From positions 496,001 through 560,000 of the forward strand of contig BQFW01000005.1 in assembly GCA_020891255.1 (NCBI GenBank): DNA of 64,000 nt. The letters are read 5' to 3'. Positions 13,918 to 43,711 of the stretch are shown here, in pieces (the stretch's first letter is position 1; each line of letters starts with the position of its first letter). Origin of the DNA: Entomortierella parvispora E1425. Lineage: Eukaryota > Fungi > Mortierellomycota. A program made the translations under genes and the position numbers. A model generated the notes under the pieces. It did not search any database, was not told the origin of the DNA, and saw only the letters and a program-made list of their open reading frames with translations.

Positions 13918-14906
13918 ATGTTGAGATTCCAAGGGAAAACGTAGACTTCGATGTAATACCACCTTCCTATCAAGTCAAGGTCCAACTTTCTCACAATAAT
14001 AATAGCAGTATTATTATAACCCATTTTTTTTTGTTTGAAAAAAGAAATCTTGGCGTCAAGAGAGCAGCTCAAATCGTAGGGGAGATAAGGAAGTTCTGTC
14101 GCTCTGGCATGTGGGTTGAGCTCTGTAGTTGCTTGTCAACTTGCGGCGGTATGGTCATTTTCGGATGCAGAGGATGACATCCCCCGTCGCCGGTCGTTCA
14201 TTGACGGTTCCGGGCATTCTCAATTTTATAACTGGTGGGTTGGTGTGGTCTACTCTCTTACCTCTCTTACGGGCAGTAAAAAGGAAGAGTCTCTTATGGC
14301 GCAGTCTTTTTGGCGCATGGCAATGTGAGGGATTGTAGGTAGCTCAGAAAGTCAGATCGCCATTCCTTGACGACAGGCGTGTCAGACTGTTTAGATAAAT
14401 CCCTTGCACCCCTCTTCACTTCAGCCGATCGCTCCTTTTGTTCAACCTCTAAGCGAGGTAGACTTTCAAACTGTGGTTTAGCCATTGTCGTGGATAAAGG
14501 CGATAAGAGTCTGCACATCTTACCCCTGCCTTGAAATCGTTGACGAGATCAAACCATCCTTGGATGAAGCCCCTCACTCCCTTAAGTTGAATGTATCGCG
14601 CTGGAGACTTGAATTTCTATAATCATACTACTTCTGAAATCTTGCTTTTTCTCTGCCCTCCCCTTGAGCCACAGCATGCACGTCGAACTATGCACGACTG
14701 GCAACAAAAGGGGTTCACAATGCTTCCATGTTGACATATGTTTATTGAAAAATATCTTTCAAAATTGAGCAAGTCAAGGACAAACTTCCGAACACCATAT
14801 TGACTATCTTCGCCATTCTTGTGTTCGCTCCTCTCTTCCTGCAATGAGCTTTCAGCTTCAAAAGTAATCTCCATTCCCACAATTTTTTTTTCTCGCTCTT
14901 GACACA

Positions 14907-36093: not shown

Positions 36094-36528
36094 GCTCATA
36101 AGTCTACTTCAACATGAACCGTTGAAAAAAAAATAGTCAGCATCCTCCATCTGTTGGAATTCAACGAGCTGTCCGGGCTGGCAATGTCTTTTGCCATTGT
36201 CTGCAATGTACCGTTGCTGTTGGTGAATCCGTCCTTGCTCCTGCTCCTGTCCTTTCTACTTGTCCGTGGCAATGTCGTGCTGAGTGGATGCAAACTTCCT
36301 CGCCACAAAGGCATCCTTGAGAAAAGTGGGCAGATCAGAAGCACAGTCACACTTTTGCTGAGAATGTGCCCCATGGCGGCCCTTAACGGAAAAAACGAAG
36401 CGCGCGCGCCCCTGACGCCTTTGGCCTGTCCTTTCCTGCCCTCCTTTTGTCCCTTGCTCTGCCTCCTTCCTTTCCGCATCCTTCCTTCCACCTTCAGGAT
36501 TCAAAGAACAAGGACAAGAAGTCAACAG

Positions 36529-38181
36529 ATGCCTCGACTCAGGACCAAAATAAAGCACCTTCTCATCCTGCTCTTTCTTGGCTATGGCTACTCGGTCTGG
36601 CTCCTTCACAAATCGGCCAAAAAGCCCGCTCGACATGTCTCTTCCAAATTCAGTGTCCAGCCTCGTGAAGCCGATCCAACCCTGAAAAAGTTCATCAAGA
36701 AGCTACCACTCAAAGAGCGGTTCGAGATTGAACGACGCCACATTGGATACAACCTCAAGCTCGACCAGAAGGATGCCTTTGACTTTTCATCATGCGGCAT
36801 GTGGCCAGCCCAATATCTAAAGAACAAACAGAATCAGGCACCAAAGTCCAATAACCAAGCAGGGCAACAGATTGCAGCAGACTACTCGACACGAAGGATG
36901 ATCGTCCATAGCTGTGGTGGAGCAGGACGCGAGGATGAGGATGGTATCCTCATTCAGGAAGAGCCGTGTGGTCAAATATCGGATCGGCTATTGAGCACAG
37001 TCAGCTTGTTTGTCTATGGACTGTTGACAGATCGCGAGTTTTTTATTGACTGGCATGGACACCCTCTCCGATCTCTACTTCGGACACCTTTCATGAACCT
37101 GAGCCCTCCACCAGATCCCCCATCACCCAAGGATGCAAAGAAAGCCTCAAATGGCCAGTCTTGGGATCCAGTGTCCGTATCTCTCCAAGACTGGGAAGCT
37201 GAAGAGTTGGATGCTACTTTCAGGATCCAATCCACCAGTGTCTATCTAGATACTCGTAAGAGTGTCCTACGAGGCGAGTCTTATGGACCTCAATCACAGC
37301 AGCAACCAAGTCAGCATGTTGTAAGGACAAGGGATCAGATCATGACAGCTCCTCAGCTCAGAGTACAGTTGAATCGAGGACTCGCCCAGCGATTTCTCAC
37401 AGATCCCTCTTATGCAGACCAGCTCGAGAGCATAGGGCTTCGACAGCACAACGCCTACGAATGTGTCCTTTCTTTTCTATTTCGACCTACTCAGAGCATA
37501 CAAGAGATGATCCATCAATATCGGGCCGTATTTAAGACGCCAGGAGTCGTCACAGTGGGAATTCATCTCCCTTCCAGGATTGAACATGTGCATTCACTAC
37601 AGCGATCACAGAAAAGTCGGCTTGATCTCGCTGATTTCGAACAGTCTATACCTTGTGCACAGGAACTATCCCAAGCTATAAGCAAGAAGAACCAGAGCCC
37701 CGGCATAAGGTTTCTTTACGTGATCCTCACAGATACTGAGCATATTCGGCAACAGGTTCAGGATCAATACGGTCAACATCTAGACCTCATCTTCCCACCA
37801 TTGTCTTATCAGCTGCATCAGCTCTCTCTGCAAGGCAACAATGAGGACGAGAATGATAAATTCAAGAGACGGGATGTTACTTACCAGCATGGAGATGGGC
37901 AAGAGTACCATGAGAACGAGAATGAAGAATCAACCCTCCTGCAAAGCTATCTCTTCTCTGAAACGGACTATCAAATCGTCACAGCCACAGGGTTTAGCAA
38001 ACTGGCGCTTTTCAGGAAGGGTGTTGCAGGTCGAAGGACGGCAGTCTTGATGCCATCAAATGATGAAGCAGAACTTTTCAAAGAGGGTAGCAAGAATGGG
38101 ATTCGATTGCCAAAGTGTTCCCGGCTAGAGGATGCTATCGCGCCCTGGGATCTTATCGCGTCCTTTGGGTCTCTTGGGTAA
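36529..38181 (+). CDS. Type II membrane glycosyltransferase-like protein, fucosyltransferase-like (GT-B)
   Basis: Short N-terminal tail and single TM (HLLILLFLGYGYSVWLL); GQISDRLLSTVSLFVYGLLTDREFFIDW, VTVGIHL, FLYVILTD, ESTLLQSYLFSETDYQIVTATGFSKLA follow the motif order of alpha-1,2/1,6-fucosyltransferase folds. Confidence 0.6.
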   Translation: MPRLRTKIKHLLILLFLGYGYSVWLLHKSAKKPARHVSSKFSVQPREADPTLKKFIKKLPLKERFEIERRHIGYNLKLDQKDAFDFSSCGMWPAQYLKNKQNQAPKSNNQAGQQIAADYSTRRMIVHSCGGAGREDEDGILIQEEPCGQISDRLLSTVSLFVYGLLTDREFFIDWHGHPLRSLLRTPFMNLSPPPDPPSPKDAKKASNGQSWDPVSVSLQDWEAEELDATFRIQSTSVYLDTRKSVLRGESYGPQSQQQPSQHVVRTRDQIMTAPQLRVQLNRGLAQRFLTDPSYADQLESIGLRQHNAYECVLSFLFRPTQSIQEMIHQYRAVFKTPGVVTVGIHLPSRIEHVHSLQRSQKSRLDLADFEQSIPCAQELSQAISKKNQSPGIRFLYVILTDTEHIRQQVQDQYGQHLDLIFPPLSYQLHQLSLQGNNEDENDKFKRRDVTYQHGDGQEYHENENEESTLLQSYLFSETDYQIVTATGFSKLALFRKGVAGRRTAVLMPSNDEAELFKEGSKNGIRLPKCSRLEDAIAPWDLIASFGSLG

Positions 38182-38251: not shown

Positions 38252-39871
38252 TTATTGTTCATTTTTCATTGCATCACATCGGTAGAAGACATCTTTTCTC
38301 GTCTCCCAGAGCTCATTTCCAGCAATCGTCCTGATAATTGTCTGGACAGGCTTGCCCTCTAGCATGTCGCGGATATTGTTGGAAATATCATCAATGAACA
38401 TGTACTCTGGGCCCTCCGGTGTCCTCTTGATATTGACCACGATATCAAAAATAGGGCGTGTGGTACGCGGGTGGACCACCTTTCTTCCGTCGACAGCATT
38501 CGTATCCGAGACGAGTGCCTTTGTCGACCCTCCCAGGACCTTGTTCAGTACGGGGTTGTACAATACGTCTTCGATATCTCCATGAACACAAGCAATCGTC
38601 TGAATCGACCTCATCGCCACCGTCTGACAGACCTCGACCTCCTGCTTCGTGTTCAATTCGTCAATCGCGATGATATCGGGTGAATGGCTCCGGATACAGT
38701 CCACGAGGGTTGTATACTGCTGGTCAGGGTCCTCTGGACGAAACACACGGGAAGTGCCTGTATACTCCTTTCTCGTCTCGGCGTCTCCACACACCTCCCC
38801 CGAGGTGTCGATCAAACAAAGACAGTTTTGCTGCGATAGATACAAGCTCAGGTCGCGAAGGGTGGTCGTCTTGCCCACGTTGGGTGCGCCACACAAAAGG
38901 ATGCTCTGTCCTGGCTTCACCAGGCCTGAAAACGCTTGCAAGAGTCCCGATACTTTTCGACCCACTCGAATTGTAATACCTGTGACCTCGCCATTGTACA
39001 ACACAGCGGCGGCCCGATGCAAGGTCTTTCCAAAAATCACACGGTTTTGTTTCGTTGGCACAAGGCCAGGTAATCGATCTACGATGGAATCCAGGTCCAG
39101 ATATTCAATCGCCTGACTCAATTGAACCGTCCGGCCCTTGATTTTGGCAGACAGGTTGAATCCCACATCGATGAATATGTCGGTCAGGTCCAGGTCGTCC
39201 AAGTCGAGGTCCTCGATATCCAAGTCCCCGAGAACATAGCGCAGAGCCTCTGTGTCGCACTGAAAGGACAGAGGTTCGATGCTCTCTTTTGTCAAGGTGG
39301 GCTTAGGGATGACGTTGGTGACGCCTGTTGAAAACGATGGTCCCTCGGCTTGTTTGGCTGGGGGTGTTACTGACCCCTCGTCCGGTATTACGGTCCGTGT
39401 TTTGTAAGGGACATGTGTCCCGTTCGAGGTAGAATGGTTGGCAACATGATTGCTGATCGCCGCAGGAGGCGGAGGAGGGGGAGGAAAAGCAGAGGGATGG
39501 AGAGGTGCTGATGCTTCTGATGGTTCCAGTTGGGCGGTCTTTACTACAGTCTCTGAAGTCGCATTCACGCCAGAAGCAGCTGCTGCTGCAGGGGGAGGAG
39601 GAAGAGGAGGAGCTTTGATGACCGGTTTGGGCGTAAACGTCGGCCTAGTCAGCGTCACAGTATGGGCATTCAACTCCATATAGCCCGAGGATTCAATGAT
39701 GTACTTGAGTTGTCGAGCCGTATCGATTCTACGATCCTGAAGCGCCTTGGCGAAAACGGTAGCGTCCACATGCCGGGTGTTCTCGAAACATTGCTGTGCG
39801 GCGGCCCTGATAGCAGCGGCCCTTGCCTTCTTGCTCTGCGGAGGGGTGGTGATGGGAGCCAACATTCCCAT
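38252..39871 (-). CDS. Ycf45/SpoIIIAA-family P-loop ATPase, copy 1; intronless
   Basis: DIFIDVG, NRVIFGKTLHR, GITIRVGR, Walker A GAPNVGKTT, IDTSGEVCGD, HSPDIIAIDE (Walker B), CVHG, NPVLNKVLGG, PIFDIVV are colinear with Ycf45. Pro/Ala-rich linker after a small N-terminal domain. Confidence 0.85.
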   Translation of the reverse strand: MGMLAPITTPPQSKKARAAAIRAAAQQCFENTRHVDATVFAKALQDRRIDTARQLKYIIESSGYMELNAHTVTLTRPTFTPKPVIKAPPLPPPPAAAAASGVNATSETVVKTAQLEPSEASAPLHPSAFPPPPPPPAAISNHVANHSTSNGTHVPYKTRTVIPDEGSVTPPAKQAEGPSFSTGVTNVIPKPTLTKESIEPLSFQCDTEALRYVLGDLDIEDLDLDDLDLTDIFIDVGFNLSAKIKGRTVQLSQAIEYLDLDSIVDRLPGLVPTKQNRVIFGKTLHRAAAVLYNGEVTGITIRVGRKVSGLLQAFSGLVKPGQSILLCGAPNVGKTTTLRDLSLYLSQQNCLCLIDTSGEVCGDAETRKEYTGTSRVFRPEDPDQQYTTLVDCIRSHSPDIIAIDELNTKQEVEVCQTVAMRSIQTIACVHGDIEDVLYNPVLNKVLGGSTKALVSDTNAVDGRKVVHPRTTRPIFDIVVNIKRTPEGPEYMFIDDISNNIRDMLEGKPVQTIIRTIAGNELWETRKDVFYRCDAMKNEQ

Positions 39872-40414
39872 AAAGAACCAGCGATTTTTGCCTGGCCTGA
39901 GGCAAAGTGGACGGACGGACGGGATGGGATGGGATGGGAGTCAAGAAACAAAAAACAATAAAGAAAAAGGAAAAAGGAAAAAGAAAAAGACGGCAAGAAA
40001 GCTGTGCAACTCTTTTTTTTTTTTTTTTTACTTTTTTCCCTTTGCTTTGAATCACTTGCAAATTGATGCTCACACGCTGACGGGGAGGGCAATGTGATGG
40101 TTGGCCACCCATTGCATGTGTGGTTTGGTGTGGACACAGGTTGTTTGACACAAGGCAAGGTCTTGGTGTTAGCTCTGGGCTGGCTGCTATTCTACTGACA
40201 AAATGACGAACAGACTCACTGACATGTAAGAAAAAGAAGGGTTCTTTCGAGCACGCAGGGTCCCCTTTTGCTATTCTGTTTGTGGGGGGATTTCGTTTTC
40301 TTCTTTTGTGCAGGCCAGCTGCTCACAGATTCGATTGTTTTTTTACTCAGTGGGCTTGGGAATGAACAGAGGGAGAAGGGTATAGACTATGAATGATATT
40401 TAACTCTTGGTGGA

Positions 40415-41785
40415 TTACCAGGCTGAATACATGGGAGGCGCGCCTGGTGGCAGGTCGAACTCCGGCTTCAAAATCTCTGCATACATGGGAGGATCGACAG
40501 GGTACACAGACGACAACAAGTCCTCGACCACCATACGTTCACAAACTCGTCCGTGGACATCAAAGAACCCGACATGGGGATTGAATCGAGCCACTCTCTC
40601 CAACTCGATCGCATGCGAGTGATGATGAGGACAGTTCTCCATACCCACCAACGCAATCGTCACATAGGCCCAGGTCTCGCCCAGGAGCTCTAGTTCAAAC
40701 TCGTCCATGTCCAAGGCCTCACCATCCAAAAAGATCAGGAGCGACAGCTTGGGCATACCGGGCGTGGGCTGCCATCCATAGACGGGATCCCATCGTCCAT
40801 GACCATAGTTGCGGTTTTGATGCTCAAAATAAGTGTTCTTCACCACCTGCCAGCCCCGCATGACCTGGGTGCCGCCTCCGACACGGACACCGTTCCTCCA
40901 GTCGCGTGGGAAGTTGTGGGCCGAGATCTGACCGACATACTTGCCTGAGCTCGAGAATGTCACAGTGTCGATGCCGTGTTGGGTGGGGTGCTCTTTCTGG
41001 GCACGGGGAACCATGTGGTGGAGGACACGGTGGACAAGATGCTCGACCAGGGCAATGTTGGAGGGCTGGTCATGGTAACGGATCCTACCATCCGGGCCCC
41101 AGACACCATTGCGTGGATCCCAACCCATAGAACCCGAGACATCGATGAGCAGCATGGTCTCCAAATGGTCTGTGCCATTGTGAAGTCCCTCTGCCAATTG
41201 ATGCAGTGCCTCTCTTCTGGCCTCGTACACCACGTTCGTGACTTGACTCGAGTACTCGTGGGACTTTGTTCGGGGGTCGTACTGGAAGATATCGCCGGGA
41301 CTCTGATACATAGCCAAGCGACCAGGGTCAATCGGCACTTGCAAGGACATGCGCATATTAGCCTGCATCATGATAGTGCTCAAGTCACGTCGGATGTTGA
41401 GGGGTCGTAAGGTAGGGTGCTTCTTGCCATCGGGCGATTTTCCATTGTTGAGCACGAAGTAGAGTCTCTTTTCGGCGGCGTTTTCCCAATAGGACCCCTC
41501 CGAGTAAGGCGCTGCGAGACGTCGGTCCGAGATCCATAGAATCGGGATTGGTTCCATGTAGCCCTTTTTGAGTCGTCGTCGGAACTCGTTAGGATGGCTT
41601 TGACGAAGTCGCTCCCAATACTCTTGCATCCTTGTGGAAGCCCAGTAGCGCATGACCATATCATAACGTGGGGACCCGGGTGGTCCCCAGTGTTGCTCCA
41701 TCAACTGGGTGGACTTTTCCAAGTTGATTTTGTTTTTCTCTTCGCTGGGAATGATCCCAAAGAACGTTGATAGTCGTTTGCTCAT
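40415..41785 (-). CDS. von Willebrand factor A (vWA) domain protein with uncharacterised N-terminal region; intronless
   Basis: MIDAS motif LLIDVSGSM, later TVTFS, GGGT and LLIFLDGE, and VTIALVG. Confidence 0.8.
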   Translation of the reverse strand: MSKRLSTFFGIIPSEEKNKINLEKSTQLMEQHWGPPGSPRYDMVMRYWASTRMQEYWERLRQSHPNEFRRRLKKGYMEPIPILWISDRRLAAPYSEGSYWENAAEKRLYFVLNNGKSPDGKKHPTLRPLNIRRDLSTIMMQANMRMSLQVPIDPGRLAMYQSPGDIFQYDPRTKSHEYSSQVTNVVYEARREALHQLAEGLHNGTDHLETMLLIDVSGSMGWDPRNGVWGPDGRIRYHDQPSNIALVEHLVHRVLHHMVPRAQKEHPTQHGIDTVTFSSSGKYVGQISAHNFPRDWRNGVRVGGGTQVMRGWQVVKNTYFEHQNRNYGHGRWDPVYGWQPTPGMPKLSLLIFLDGEALDMDEFELELLGETWAYVTIALVGMENCPHHHSHAIELERVARFNPHVGFFDVHGRVCERMVVEDLLSSVYPVDPPMYAEILKPEFDLPPGAPPMYSAW

Positions 41786-41874
41786 TGTGGGATGAAGTCT
41801 GTAGAGGTGTGTTAAGGTGATGAATTCAAGTGTCGATCCGAGTAAAAAGAAGGGGGGAGGAGAGAAGGGGGGAG

Positions 41875-41946
41875 GGGAAAAGAGGAGAAGAGGAGAAGAG
41901 GAAAGAGGATAGAGGAAAGAGGAAAGAGGATAGAGGAAAGAGGAAG
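41875..41946. repeat. Purine-rich (AGAGGA/AGAGGAA)n tract in the vWA gene 5' region
   Basis: Direct reading; CT-rich on the coding strand, as is typical of fungal leaders. Confidence 0.7.
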
Positions 41947-42280
41947 AAAGGAGGGAAAGCGACGTAAACGGCTAAAGGAACAGGGCAGGAGAATAAAAGG
42001 TTTAAGAACCTTCCACAAAAGTCGACTCAAAAAAGGGCGGCAGGTGACTGGAGGCCGCTTAAATCGAGGGCTCTCGGGCTGTTGCTGAAGGGTCGAGTGG
42101 ACCAAGGTTGCCTTTTGTTGATAATGAAGTACCTTCCTGTCTTTGAGGGATTTTTGGCCTTCTTTCAACAGTCGACAAGTTGTCACTCGCCAATGGGATG
42201 AATGGAGATCTAGCCCGCCCTTCAACACTGTTTATTTCCATCTTTCTCTTGCTAACAGGTCGATGTGTTTTCCATTTTTA

Positions 42281-43711
42281 TTACAATGCACAAGGAAACA
42301 GGGTCTCCTGGGTTGTCTCTCTCAACTCGTCTCCGATGATGGTCCGTGTGACGGTCTGGATCGGCTTGCCCTCCAACATATCCCGGACATTGTTGGAAAC
42401 ATCATCAATAAATGTATATTCCAATCCCTCGGGCACTCTCTTGATATTAATCACGACATCAAAGACGGGACGTGTGCTACGCTGGTGGACCACCTTTCTA
42501 CCGTCAATAGCCTTCATATCCGAGACGAGGGTCTCGGTGGAGCCTCCCAGGACCTTGTTCAGCTTTGAGTTGTACAACAGATCCTCGATATTACCATGGA
42601 TACACGCGAGCATCTGAATGGATCGCAGGGCAATGGTCTGACAGACTTCGACTTCCTGTTTGGTATTCAGTTCATCAATGGCGATGATATCGGGCGAATG
42701 GTTCCGGACACAGTCGACCAGCGCAGCATACTGCTTGTCAGGATCCTCTGGCCGGAAGACGCGTGTGGTGCCCACGAACTGCGTTTTCATCTGGGAGTCA
42801 CCACAGACCTCGCCCGAGGTGTCGATCAAGCAAAGACAGCTGTCCATCGAGAGATACGAGCAAAGGTCACGAAGGGAGGTCGTTTTTCCGACATTGGGAG
42901 CACCGCACAAGAGGACATTCTTTCCCTCCACCAATCCCTCAAACAAAGGCAAAAGCCCAGAGGCTTTGCGGCCGACTCGAATCGTCAGCCCCGAGATCTC
43001 ACCGTCGTACATCACAGCCGCCAATCGATGCAGGGTCTCGCCAAAGATCACTCGGTTCTGTTTGTCGGTCGGGATGGCCCTGGGCAGTCTCGCCATGATC
43101 GTTTCCACATCCGAGAGTTCAATCCTTTGTCTCAATTGAACAGTCTTGCTATTGATCTTGGCCGATAAGGTACCGCCCACATCAATGAAAATGTCGGTTA
43201 ATCCGAGGTTTTCCAGATCAAGATCGTTGATATCCAGATCCTCAAGAATGTAGCGAATGGCTTCTGTATCGCACTCAAAGGATACAGGCTCGATCCTTCG
43301 CGTAGTGGTGGTAGGCTCAAAAGCATCATCATCATCATAATCATCCGTGACCACGGTTGAATAGTGGGACTCGACTGTTCTCAAGGAGAGGTTGGGTACT
43401 GGATTGCTCTGGAGAGGTTGGGCAGCAACAGGTCTAGGTGGATTGTTTGCAGCCGTGGAAGAAGGAAGGGCCCTGGTGAAGCTTGGCCTGGTGAGGTACA
43501 CTTTGTTGTCATCGAACCGGAGATAGCCTGTGGATTCGATGATAGACTTGAGTTTTTGGGTCGTGTCAATACCTTTCTCGCGGAGTGCAAACCCAAAGAT
43601 GCCGGCTTCGATAACGCCCGTGGTTTTCAAGAGGGCTCGAGCTACACCGAGAACGATAGTCGCTTGTCTTTGTTGTGCTGCTGAGGCGGAAGAGGAAGAG
43701 GAGCCGAGCAT
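42281..43711 (-). CDS. Ycf45/SpoIIIAA-family P-loop ATPase, copy 2; intronless
   Basis: Same motifs as copy 1 (GAPNVGKTT, IDTSGEVCGD, NHSPDIIAIDELNTKQEVEVCQT); shares nucleotide tracts with copy 1 such as TCCCAGGACCTTGTTCAG. Confidence 0.85.
   Translation of the reverse strand: MLGSSSSSASAAQQRQATIVLGVARALLKTTGVIEAGIFGFALREKGIDTTQKLKSIIESTGYLRFDDNKVYLTRPSFTRALPSSTAANNPPRPVAAQPLQSNPVPNLSLRTVESHYSTVVTDDYDDDDAFEPTTTTRRIEPVSFECDTEAIRYILEDLDINDLDLENLGLTDIFIDVGGTLSAKINSKTVQLRQRIELSDVETIMARLPRAIPTDKQNRVIFGETLHRLAAVMYDGEISGLTIRVGRKASGLLPLFEGLVEGKNVLLCGAPNVGKTTSLRDLCSYLSMDSCLCLIDTSGEVCGDSQMKTQFVGTTRVFRPEDPDKQYAALVDCVRNHSPDIIAIDELNTKQEVEVCQTIALRSIQMLACIHGNIEDLLYNSKLNKVLGGSTETLVSDMKAIDGRKVVHQRSTRPVFDVVINIKRVPEGLEYTFIDDVSNNVRDMLEGKPIQTVTRTIIGDELRETTQETLFPCAL

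Follow-up and report, generated by a model that had tools for sequence, protein, structure and literature searches.

Three co-oriented genes on one strand

We analysed a window of 64,000 nucleotides from contig BQFW01000005.1 of the fungus Entomortierella parvispora E1425. Its minus strand, on which all features below lie unless another strand is given, carries three uninterrupted open reading frames (ORFs), co-oriented and arranged head-to-tail. They encode two Ycf45/SpoIIIAA-like P-loop ATPases, here called ATPase A and ATPase B, and between them a protein with a predicted von Willebrand factor A (vWA) domain. The ORF for ATPase A (38252–39871, 539 aa) matches PF19568 and reads as an N-terminal winged-helix-like domain, a Pro/Ala-rich linker and a Ycf45/SpoIIIAA-like P-loop core. 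The vWA gene occupies 40415–41785 (456 aa), and ATPase B 42281–43711 (476 aa); the ATPase B ORF coincides exactly with a 476-aa gene in the GenBank assembly (GCA_020891255.1). Measured from stop to start codon, the vWA gene and ATPase A are separated by a 543-bp spacer (39872–40414) with an A-run followed by a CT-rich tract, and ATPase B and the vWA gene by one of 495 bp (41786–42280) with a strain-variable low-complexity tract at ~41862–41948. An earlier note on this DNA, made from the sequence alone, had described three consecutive, co-oriented, uninterrupted ORFs with ~0.5-kb spacers, and that description stands. It had gone on to propose an operon-like, possibly horizontally derived ATPase/adaptor system, for example for protein or ribonucleoprotein (RNP) remodelling or innate defence.

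The vWA protein has a predicted intact MIDAS

Sequence searches with the vWA protein came back empty: at the gathering thresholds there was no match in Pfam, whose VWA and VWA_2 models were among those compared, and none in NCBIfam or the PDB. The identity of the domain was therefore taken from its fold. An AlphaFold2 model built with 31 homologues was confident (pLDDT 91.7, pTM 0.91), and residues ~205–430 matched, at a Foldseek probability of 1.0, the vWA domains of BABAM1/MERIT40, Rea1-MIDAS, RGLG1, Rpn10, INTS14, complement factor B and VWA5A. For BABAM1/MERIT40, Rpn10, RGLG1, Rea1-MIDAS and VWA5A the E-values were 1e-5 to 1e-4 at sequence identities of only 8–16%. In both the alignment and the model, the five residues of the metal ion-dependent adhesion site (MIDAS) fall at canonical loop positions. 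D215, S217 and S219 belong to a DxSxS motif (DVSGS, residues 215–219, positions 41129–41143) that follows the strand at 208–215; T306 precedes the helix at 308–327, and D354 follows the strand at 346–353. Among the 31 homologues D215 and S217 never vary, and at least 90% keep S219. Together, the alignment, the confident model and the Foldseek matches bear out the earlier call of a vWA protein whose MIDAS is predicted to be intact. The helical N-terminal domain (residues 1–200) matched nothing in the structure search.

Members of the vWA family end in a consensus (L/P)PxY that two to three residues separate from the stop codon. In the window protein PPMY occurs twice, at residues 450–453 (40427–40438) and 432–435. 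PPxY motifs generally bind WW domains, as this protein may do. UBA, UBZ or SH3 modules are found on more distant paralogues, and paralogues P0112 and P0116 have VWA_2 and VWA matches that lie below the Pfam threshold. We infer that the window protein may be a cytosolic MIDAS adaptor tied to ubiquitin or Rsp5-type pathways.

All 135 vWA homologues found are eukaryotic and most are fungal, with a patchy distribution from chytrids to Dikarya; several contain introns. In the tree the window protein joins its counterpart from a metagenome relative, and Gryganskiella, Dissophora and Bifiguratus follow in turn; chytrids are basal, and the branching order among Dikarya is not resolved. Because the order runs from Mortierellomycota through Bifiguratus to basal chytrids, the tree indicates an old fungal family with apparently vertical descent and losses. 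Horizontal transfer of the gene among fungi was considered for the ~68% identity seen across phyla and the patchy distribution, and was rejected as the main reading on this same order. One homologue (P0052, 62% identity) comes from a 3.1-kb contig labelled as the rotifer Didymodactylos carnosus and takes a basal position in the main non-chytrid fungal clade, a placement that points to contamination or to transfer into a bdelloid-type genome.

ATPases A and B share a Ycf45-type core

The motifs GAPNVGKTT (Walker A), IAIDE (Walker B), IDTSGEVCGD and DELNT are present in the translations of both ATPases, whose overall identity of 54% rises to ~70% in the core, the C-terminal 340 residues. Against the Pfam family Spore_III_AA (PF19568), ATPase A scored 33.1 bits and ATPase B 28.3 bits, a small margin over the gathering cut-off of 27. 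With the SpoIIIAA equivalog model TIGR02858 they reached 44.4 and 38.4 bits, respectively, against a cut-off of 281.3, and neither is therefore a SpoIIIAA orthologue.

An AlphaFold2 model of ATPase B (pLDDT 86.7) places the core at residues 134–470 (42302–43312). Its best matches among Swiss-Prot models were Ycf45 of Porphyra, Trieres and Cyanidium, followed by SPD1 and SpoIIIAA, with E-values of 1e-27 to 8e-17; against plastid Ycf45 the E-value is 1.4e-27, the TM-score 0.61 and the root-mean-square deviation (rmsd) 3.1 Å. The solved structures matched were PilT, VirB11, DotB, FlaI and the archaeal branch-migration ATPase PINA. In an alignment of 41 homologues the residues of the Walker A and B motifs and of the Asp and His boxes (G275, K276, T277, T278, D297, E301, D346, E347, R363 and H372) are invariant or nearly so. 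Both cores are thus of Ycf45 type within the PilT/VirB11 class and, judged by these residues, predicted to be catalytically intact. Two statements of the earlier note hold here: that both ATPases keep Walker A and Walker B, on the evidence of the translations and the alignment, and that they are of Ycf45/SpoIIIAA type, on that of the PF19568 scores and the structural matches of the ATPase B core. A third, that shared substitutions betray a local duplication, survives in part. The motif IDTSGE[VI][CA]G is family-wide, bacteria included, and is no idiosyncratic marker of such an event; the duplication itself is supported by the tree, in which A and B are each other's closest paralogues.

A winged helix and probable eukaryotic relatives

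In the model of ATPase B, residues 11–73 (43493–43681) run helix-strand-helix-helix-strand-strand, which is a winged-helix topology, and residues 81–130 form a disordered linker. With the winged-helix segment, an atlas search returned winged helices that include OST-HTH/LOTUS and the Egalitarian winged helix, which we treat as leads only. A domain scan found neither a PTPase-like (PF25516) nor an R3H (PF01424) tail in ATPases A and B or in other Mortierellomycota members. Bacterial-type relatives carry both domains (P0199 and P0203) or the PTPase-like domain only (P0204).

Homologue searches showed a multi-copy family nearly confined to Mortierellomycota, where tandem arrays are common; elsewhere in the E. 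parvispora genome EMPS_03835 and EMPS_03836 stand in tandem. An array in Podila verticillata (L006:5066–18213) has four Ycf45-like ATPase genes in tandem, the third broken by an apparent frameshift near 14600. Beyond the Mortierellomycota clade, identity in an exhaustive search falls sharply, to 44% for Basidiobolus, the next match, and ~30–40% for all others; the best bacterial matches reach only 30–38%. A 3'-5' exonuclease is combined with a Ycf45-like ATPase in Basidiobolus and in long proteins of Rhodelphis, Rhodomonas, Salpingoeca and metagenome contigs (the combined proteins are P0247, P0251, P0271, P0279, P0328, P0341 and P0196), and a LOTUS/Egalitarian winged helix was detected in P0247 and P0279. 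This architecture is widespread in eukaryotes and apparently uncharacterised. None of the nine long Ycf45-like proteins scanned has a vWA domain.

In the domain tree, which contains long branches, the Mortierellomycota ATPases and their sister Basidiobolus form a clade on the eukaryotic side, apart from the bacterial/cyanobacterial R3H group, with moderate support. Given this placement, the exonuclease-fused relatives and the 30–38% bacterial matches, we read ATPases A and B as probable descendants of a eukaryotic winged helix-exonuclease-ATPase family that in Mortierellomycota has a linker in place of the exonuclease. Their features are not those of a recent bacterial import. The ATPase phylogeny thereby agrees with the local duplication proposed earlier and, with the clade sitting among eukaryotic relatives at moderate support, speaks against a bacterial origin. 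Since the core is recurrently fused to R3H, LOTUS and exonuclease modules, the substrate may be nucleic acid or RNP. Literature searches on ycf45, on SpoIIIAA with Mortierella, on SPD1 and on R3H found nothing on fungal members. The sole family member from Mucorales, P0141 of Apophysomyces ossiformis, nests deep in the Linnemannia/Mortierella clade, which suggests assembly contamination or a recent transfer.

Linkage of the two families outside the window

The arrangement recurs in a sister species represented by contigs from one bog-metagenome sample. One contig (L001) carries an ATPase tail, the ATPase B orthologue and the vWA orthologue, and another (L030) the ATPase A orthologue, a xyloglucan fucosyltransferase (XG_FTase)-like gene and Clp1. 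Both are collinear with the window, at 76–84% nucleotide identity and with flanking synteny kept; the ATPase A orthologue (P0122) is 71% identical to ATPase A, again with conserved flanking synteny. The ATPase tail on L001 (positions 3–126) is the 3' end of an extra ATPase gene that adjoins the ATPase B orthologue on its upstream side, in the place taken by a TPR gene in E. parvispora, so array copy number differs between close relatives. A second strain under the same species label (run X3) has the whole triplet on one contig at ~96% identity. Three other runs with this label (X4, X9 and X10), one of them an assembly-like set of ~37 Mb, lack the triplet at an identity of at least 85% and give low-complexity or short conserved matches only; the label may cover quite divergent lineages.

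Elsewhere, no ATPase was found near the vWA gene of Dissophora ornata, Bifiguratus, Lipomyces starkeyi or a 1.4-Mb ENA contig, nor at 20 further metagenome loci, several of which have flanks of 3–10 kb. In Gryganskiella, the closest named relative, a kinase gene and no ATPase lies upstream of the vWA gene. Conversely, no vWA gene was found near the ATPases at the Podila locus with its four tandem copies or at a Linnemannia locus. The survey covered ~25 vWA loci and these two Mortierellomycota ATPase loci, the EMPS_03835/EMPS_03836 locus not having been searched for a vWA gene. The phyletic distributions of the two families are largely independent, many genomes holding one family without the other. 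Since the genes are linked only in the metagenome relative and the second strain and are unlinked elsewhere in the sample, the pairing is best placed, on this gene-order evidence, within the Entomortierella lineage.

Bacterial neighbourhoods were screened with a MIDAS motif expression followed by Pfam on the candidates, a procedure that misses vWA domains without a MIDAS; a vWA ORF within 4 kb was seen at only 1 of 80 bacterial Ycf45 loci. In PADLOC the ATPases matched a single model, mad8, through their P-loop region (17.6 and 19.4 bits), and the vWA protein matched none. According to the earlier note, no described Ycf45-vWA pairing is known in fungi; our literature search found no paper on such a pairing. 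The rest of its proposal fares poorly. Against an operon-like system stands what the note itself had named as part of its refutation, unlinked homologues in other genomes: linkage is absent at ~25 vWA and 2 ATPase loci outside one relative and the second strain, in all other lineages sampled. Horizontal derivation conflicts with the vertical vWA tree, the eukaryotic relatives of the ATPase clade and the 30–38% identity of the bacterial matches, and a defence role drew no significant PADLOC match.

Duplication history, constraint and genomic surroundings

ATPases A and B and their orthologues form a single clade with 100% SH-aLRT support inside the Mortierellomycota radiation, in which species-specific duplicates are common. 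The tree thus dates the A/B duplication before the split from the metagenome relative while keeping it lineage-specific. Between orthologues, the ratio of nonsynonymous to synonymous substitution rates (dN/dS) is 0.14 for ATPase B, 0.18 for the vWA gene and 0.20 for ATPase A, at dS values of 0.7–1.0. In the second strain, indels cluster in both spacers, and coding sequence has just two, an in-frame deletion of 3 nt within the ATPase A linker and an insertion of 2 nt five codons short of that gene's stop. With these ratios and with indels largely outside coding sequence, all three genes are evidently maintained under purifying selection. The AG/CT-rich tract at 41862–41948, in the spacer between the vWA gene and ATPase B, is replaced in the second strain, where 85 nt are skipped and 52 other letters stand; it draws spurious matches from other sequencing runs.

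Base composition at 38–44 kb showed no anomaly, GC content and GC skew resembling the remaining window. A mobile-element context was considered and rejected, since flanking housekeeping synteny is conserved in the relative and composition is unremarkable. The triplet had been described as embedded among intron-rich genes. This does not apply to all neighbours: the XG_FTase-like gene and an alpha-galactosidase gene are intronless in the GenBank models. The former (36154–38181, plus strand) is convergent with ATPase A, has a faint match to xyloglucan fucosyltransferase (PF03254), a family unusual for a fungus, and keeps its synteny in the metagenome relative (L030:1888–3525). The window also encodes isocitrate lyase (ICL), 94% identical to that of Mortierella alpina.

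Separate genes or a coupled unit

We consider it most likely, at a rough probability of 0.62, that the three are separate nuclear genes with their own promoters, forming neither an operon nor a transferred cassette; the data require no functional coupling. ATPases A and B would be tandem-type paralogues of a family expanded in Mortierellomycota by repeated local duplication, each consisting of an N-terminal winged helix (LOTUS/OST-HTH-like), a disordered linker and an intact Ycf45-type core. They may form ATP-driven ring motors on a nucleic-acid or RNP substrate recruited via the winged helix, because bacterial and plastid relatives carry R3H and other eukaryotic ones LOTUS/winged helix plus a 3'-5' exonuclease. 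The vWA protein would serve a ubiquitin- or Rsp5-related pathway as a metal-dependent adaptor between proteins. The ATPase-vWA-ATPase order would have arisen in the Entomortierella lineage after the Gryganskiella split, when the ATPase duplication came to flank the vWA gene, and would then have been kept in the sister species and the second strain. Most likely, the two youngest ATPase copies bracket an old fungal vWA gene by chance.

Several points weigh against this view. The linkage survey is a sample of loci, with many short metagenome contigs in it, and it is from domain associations that biochemical roles are proposed for both families. Across a dS of ~0.7–1.0 the triplet has persisted, while the neighbours of the vWA gene differ in Gryganskiella, which is compatible with selection for linkage, and the long stem of the A/B clade (0.61) could reflect neofunctionalisation. 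Further, in the GenBank record BQFW01000005.1 the vWA gene and ATPase A appear as a single product of 1003 aa (38252–41785), and counterparts of the splice signals exist in the metagenome relative: a donor that is equivalent (GTAGTC), the CTCAGGCCAGGCAAA block unchanged, and a phase that fits, with 12 additional codons.

Genes of E. parvispora were called by AUGUSTUS with RNA-seq-derived cDNA, from reads that are public as DRA013164 (PMC8759367). The modelled intron (40418–39897, 522 nt) equals the whole intergenic spacer. Its donor, G/GTAATC (the slash marks the junction), overlaps the TGG-TAA end of the vWA gene, the G of GT closing the Trp codon and the T opening the stop codon; the acceptor, CTCAG/G, lies 25 nt upstream of the ATPase A ATG. 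The fusion would keep W456 and insert PGKNRWFF between the two proteins. In favour of an intron, a CT-rich tract precedes the acceptor, as it does at the ICL intron, and E. parvispora and the metagenome relative are alignable over ~158 nt before the ATPase A ATG. Against it, GT is unavoidable wherever a Trp codon meets a TAA or TAG stop, the donors GTAATC and GTAGTC lack the +5 G of the ICL intron (GTAAGG, the sole intron mapped by homology), and 522 nt is about three times the length of that intron (170 nt). Moreover, the vWA homologues all end, and the ATPase homologues all begin with the winged helix, at these same termini. We estimate the chance of phase conservation between both species at ~0.2. 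Merging of two genes in the gene model probably accounts for the 1003-aa product; a real fusion seems unlikely to us.

The fusion question bears directly on an alternative to which we give an unlikely but appreciable place: that the locus is a lineage-specific functional module in which the vWA domain, through its MIDAS, serves as substrate or partner adaptor of the flanking ring ATPases, possibly even as one spliced vWA-winged helix-ATPase polypeptide. It would be analogous to Rea1, an AAA+ ring with its own MIDAS, or to MoxR-vWA pairs. Order and orientation conserved in the sister species and the second strain, purifying selection on all three genes and the long A/B stem speak for such a module, as does the cDNA-informed AUGUSTUS model of 1003 aa with its GT over the stop codon, conserved CTCAG/G acceptor, preserved phase in both species and CT-rich tract like that of the ICL intron. 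These are offset by the lack of linkage in every other lineage sampled, the independent distributions of the families and the absence of a vWA domain from all 9 long Ycf45-like proteins (0/9). As to the splice signals, a conserved Trp codon before TAA or TAG yields the GT automatically, the chance of phase agreement is ~0.2, and the donor without +5 G opens an intron some three times the ICL length that takes up the whole spacer. The shared C-terminus of the vWA homologues and the winged-helix start of the ATPase homologues likewise favour two proteins. Functional or physical coupling of vWA protein and ATPases restricted to Entomortierella is accordingly a minority possibility, and its specific form, capture of the vWA protein as a dedicated adaptor of a winged-helix Ycf45-type ring ATPase, perhaps as a single spliced 1003-aa fusion, strikes us as doubtful.

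Far less probable is that bacteria were the source of the triplet, as an operon-derived cassette with an ATPase/adaptor or defence function acquired by horizontal transfer, a reading which the data have already largely refuted. All three genes are intronless, the fold class of the ATPases (PilT/VirB11, SpoIIIAA) is mainly prokaryotic, and E. parvispora harbours Burkholderiaceae-related endobacteria (PMC8759367). Yet the best bacterial ATPase matches, at 30–38%, have R3H/PTPase tails that A and B lack, and the fungal clade groups with eukaryotic exonuclease-fused relatives. The vWA homologues are eukaryotic only, several with introns, and their tree is vertical; a vWA ORF accompanies 1 of 80 bacterial Ycf45 loci, PADLOC gave P-loop-level noise only, composition is normal and the flanking housekeeping synteny is conserved. 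It is also highly improbable that the apparent intactness is fortuitous and at least one ORF is a duplicate in decay and not expressed. No RNA run is listed with the 5.8-kb region, the runs returned for the vWA gene are of DNA or unknown type, and at a threshold of 85% identity the region is missing from other runs under this species label. Against decay stand the dN/dS values of 0.14–0.20 at dS 0.7–1.0, the intact catalytic and MIDAS residues, and second-strain indels that avoid coding sequence except for the 3-nt in-frame deletion and the 2-nt insertion near the ATPase A stop.

Comparison with known systems

The claim of a new ATPase-adaptor or defence system mostly deflates, the pairing being young, local and absent elsewhere. 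As in MoxR-vWA and other AAA+/vWA chaperone pairs, a P-loop ATPase adjoins a MIDAS vWA protein here; unlike them, the ATPase is of the PilT/VirB11 class rather than a MoxR AAA+ protein, and the adjacency is not conserved across genomes. If the fusion or adaptor capture were true, it would represent a newly born eukaryotic ATPase-MIDAS machine and a first functional handle on nuclear Ycf45-like ATPases.

The vWA protein has the same fold as BABAM1/MERIT40, Rpn10, RGLG1, Rea1-MIDAS and VWA5A, with MIDAS residues intact, and the likeness to BABAM1-type proteins includes the ubiquitin-binding modules on its paralogues. It differs from them in having no Pfam VWA match and in its own helical N-terminal domain of ~200 residues and (L/P)PxY end. 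What emerges is a conserved fungal vWA family whose helical N-terminal domain is novel and whose members end in (L/P)PxY.

For the ATPases the closest described proteins are plastid/cyanobacterial Ycf45 and Arabidopsis SPD1 (SEEDLING PLASTID DEVELOPMENT 1), which share the core fold over ~330 residues (TM 0.6, rmsd ~3 Å, 25–27% identity) as well as Walker A and B, the Asp and His boxes and the PF19568 match. In contrast to bacterial-type Ycf45, the fungal proteins have no C-terminal PTPase-like and R3H domains and carry an N-terminal winged helix and disordered linker instead; also unlike Ycf45, they are encoded by multi-copy, tandemly duplicated nuclear genes of a non-photosynthetic fungus. 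Bacillus subtilis SpoIIIAA belongs to the same Pfam family and has the same fold (E 8e-17, TM by hit 0.73), but ATPases A and B score far below the TIGR02858 cut-off, and no SpoIIIA operon partners were seen. The exonuclease proteins of Rhodelphis, Rhodomonas, Salpingoeca and Basidiobolus lie on the same side of the tree and share the N-terminal winged-helix-type domain, the Mortierellomycota ATPases having a disordered linker where these relatives hold the exonuclease. The winged helix plus Ycf45-like core family of Mortierellomycota thereby connects to a widespread LOTUS/winged helix-3'-5' exonuclease-Ycf45-like ATPase architecture, a link that points to a nucleic-acid-related role for Ycf45-type ATPases, functionally obscure even in plastids.

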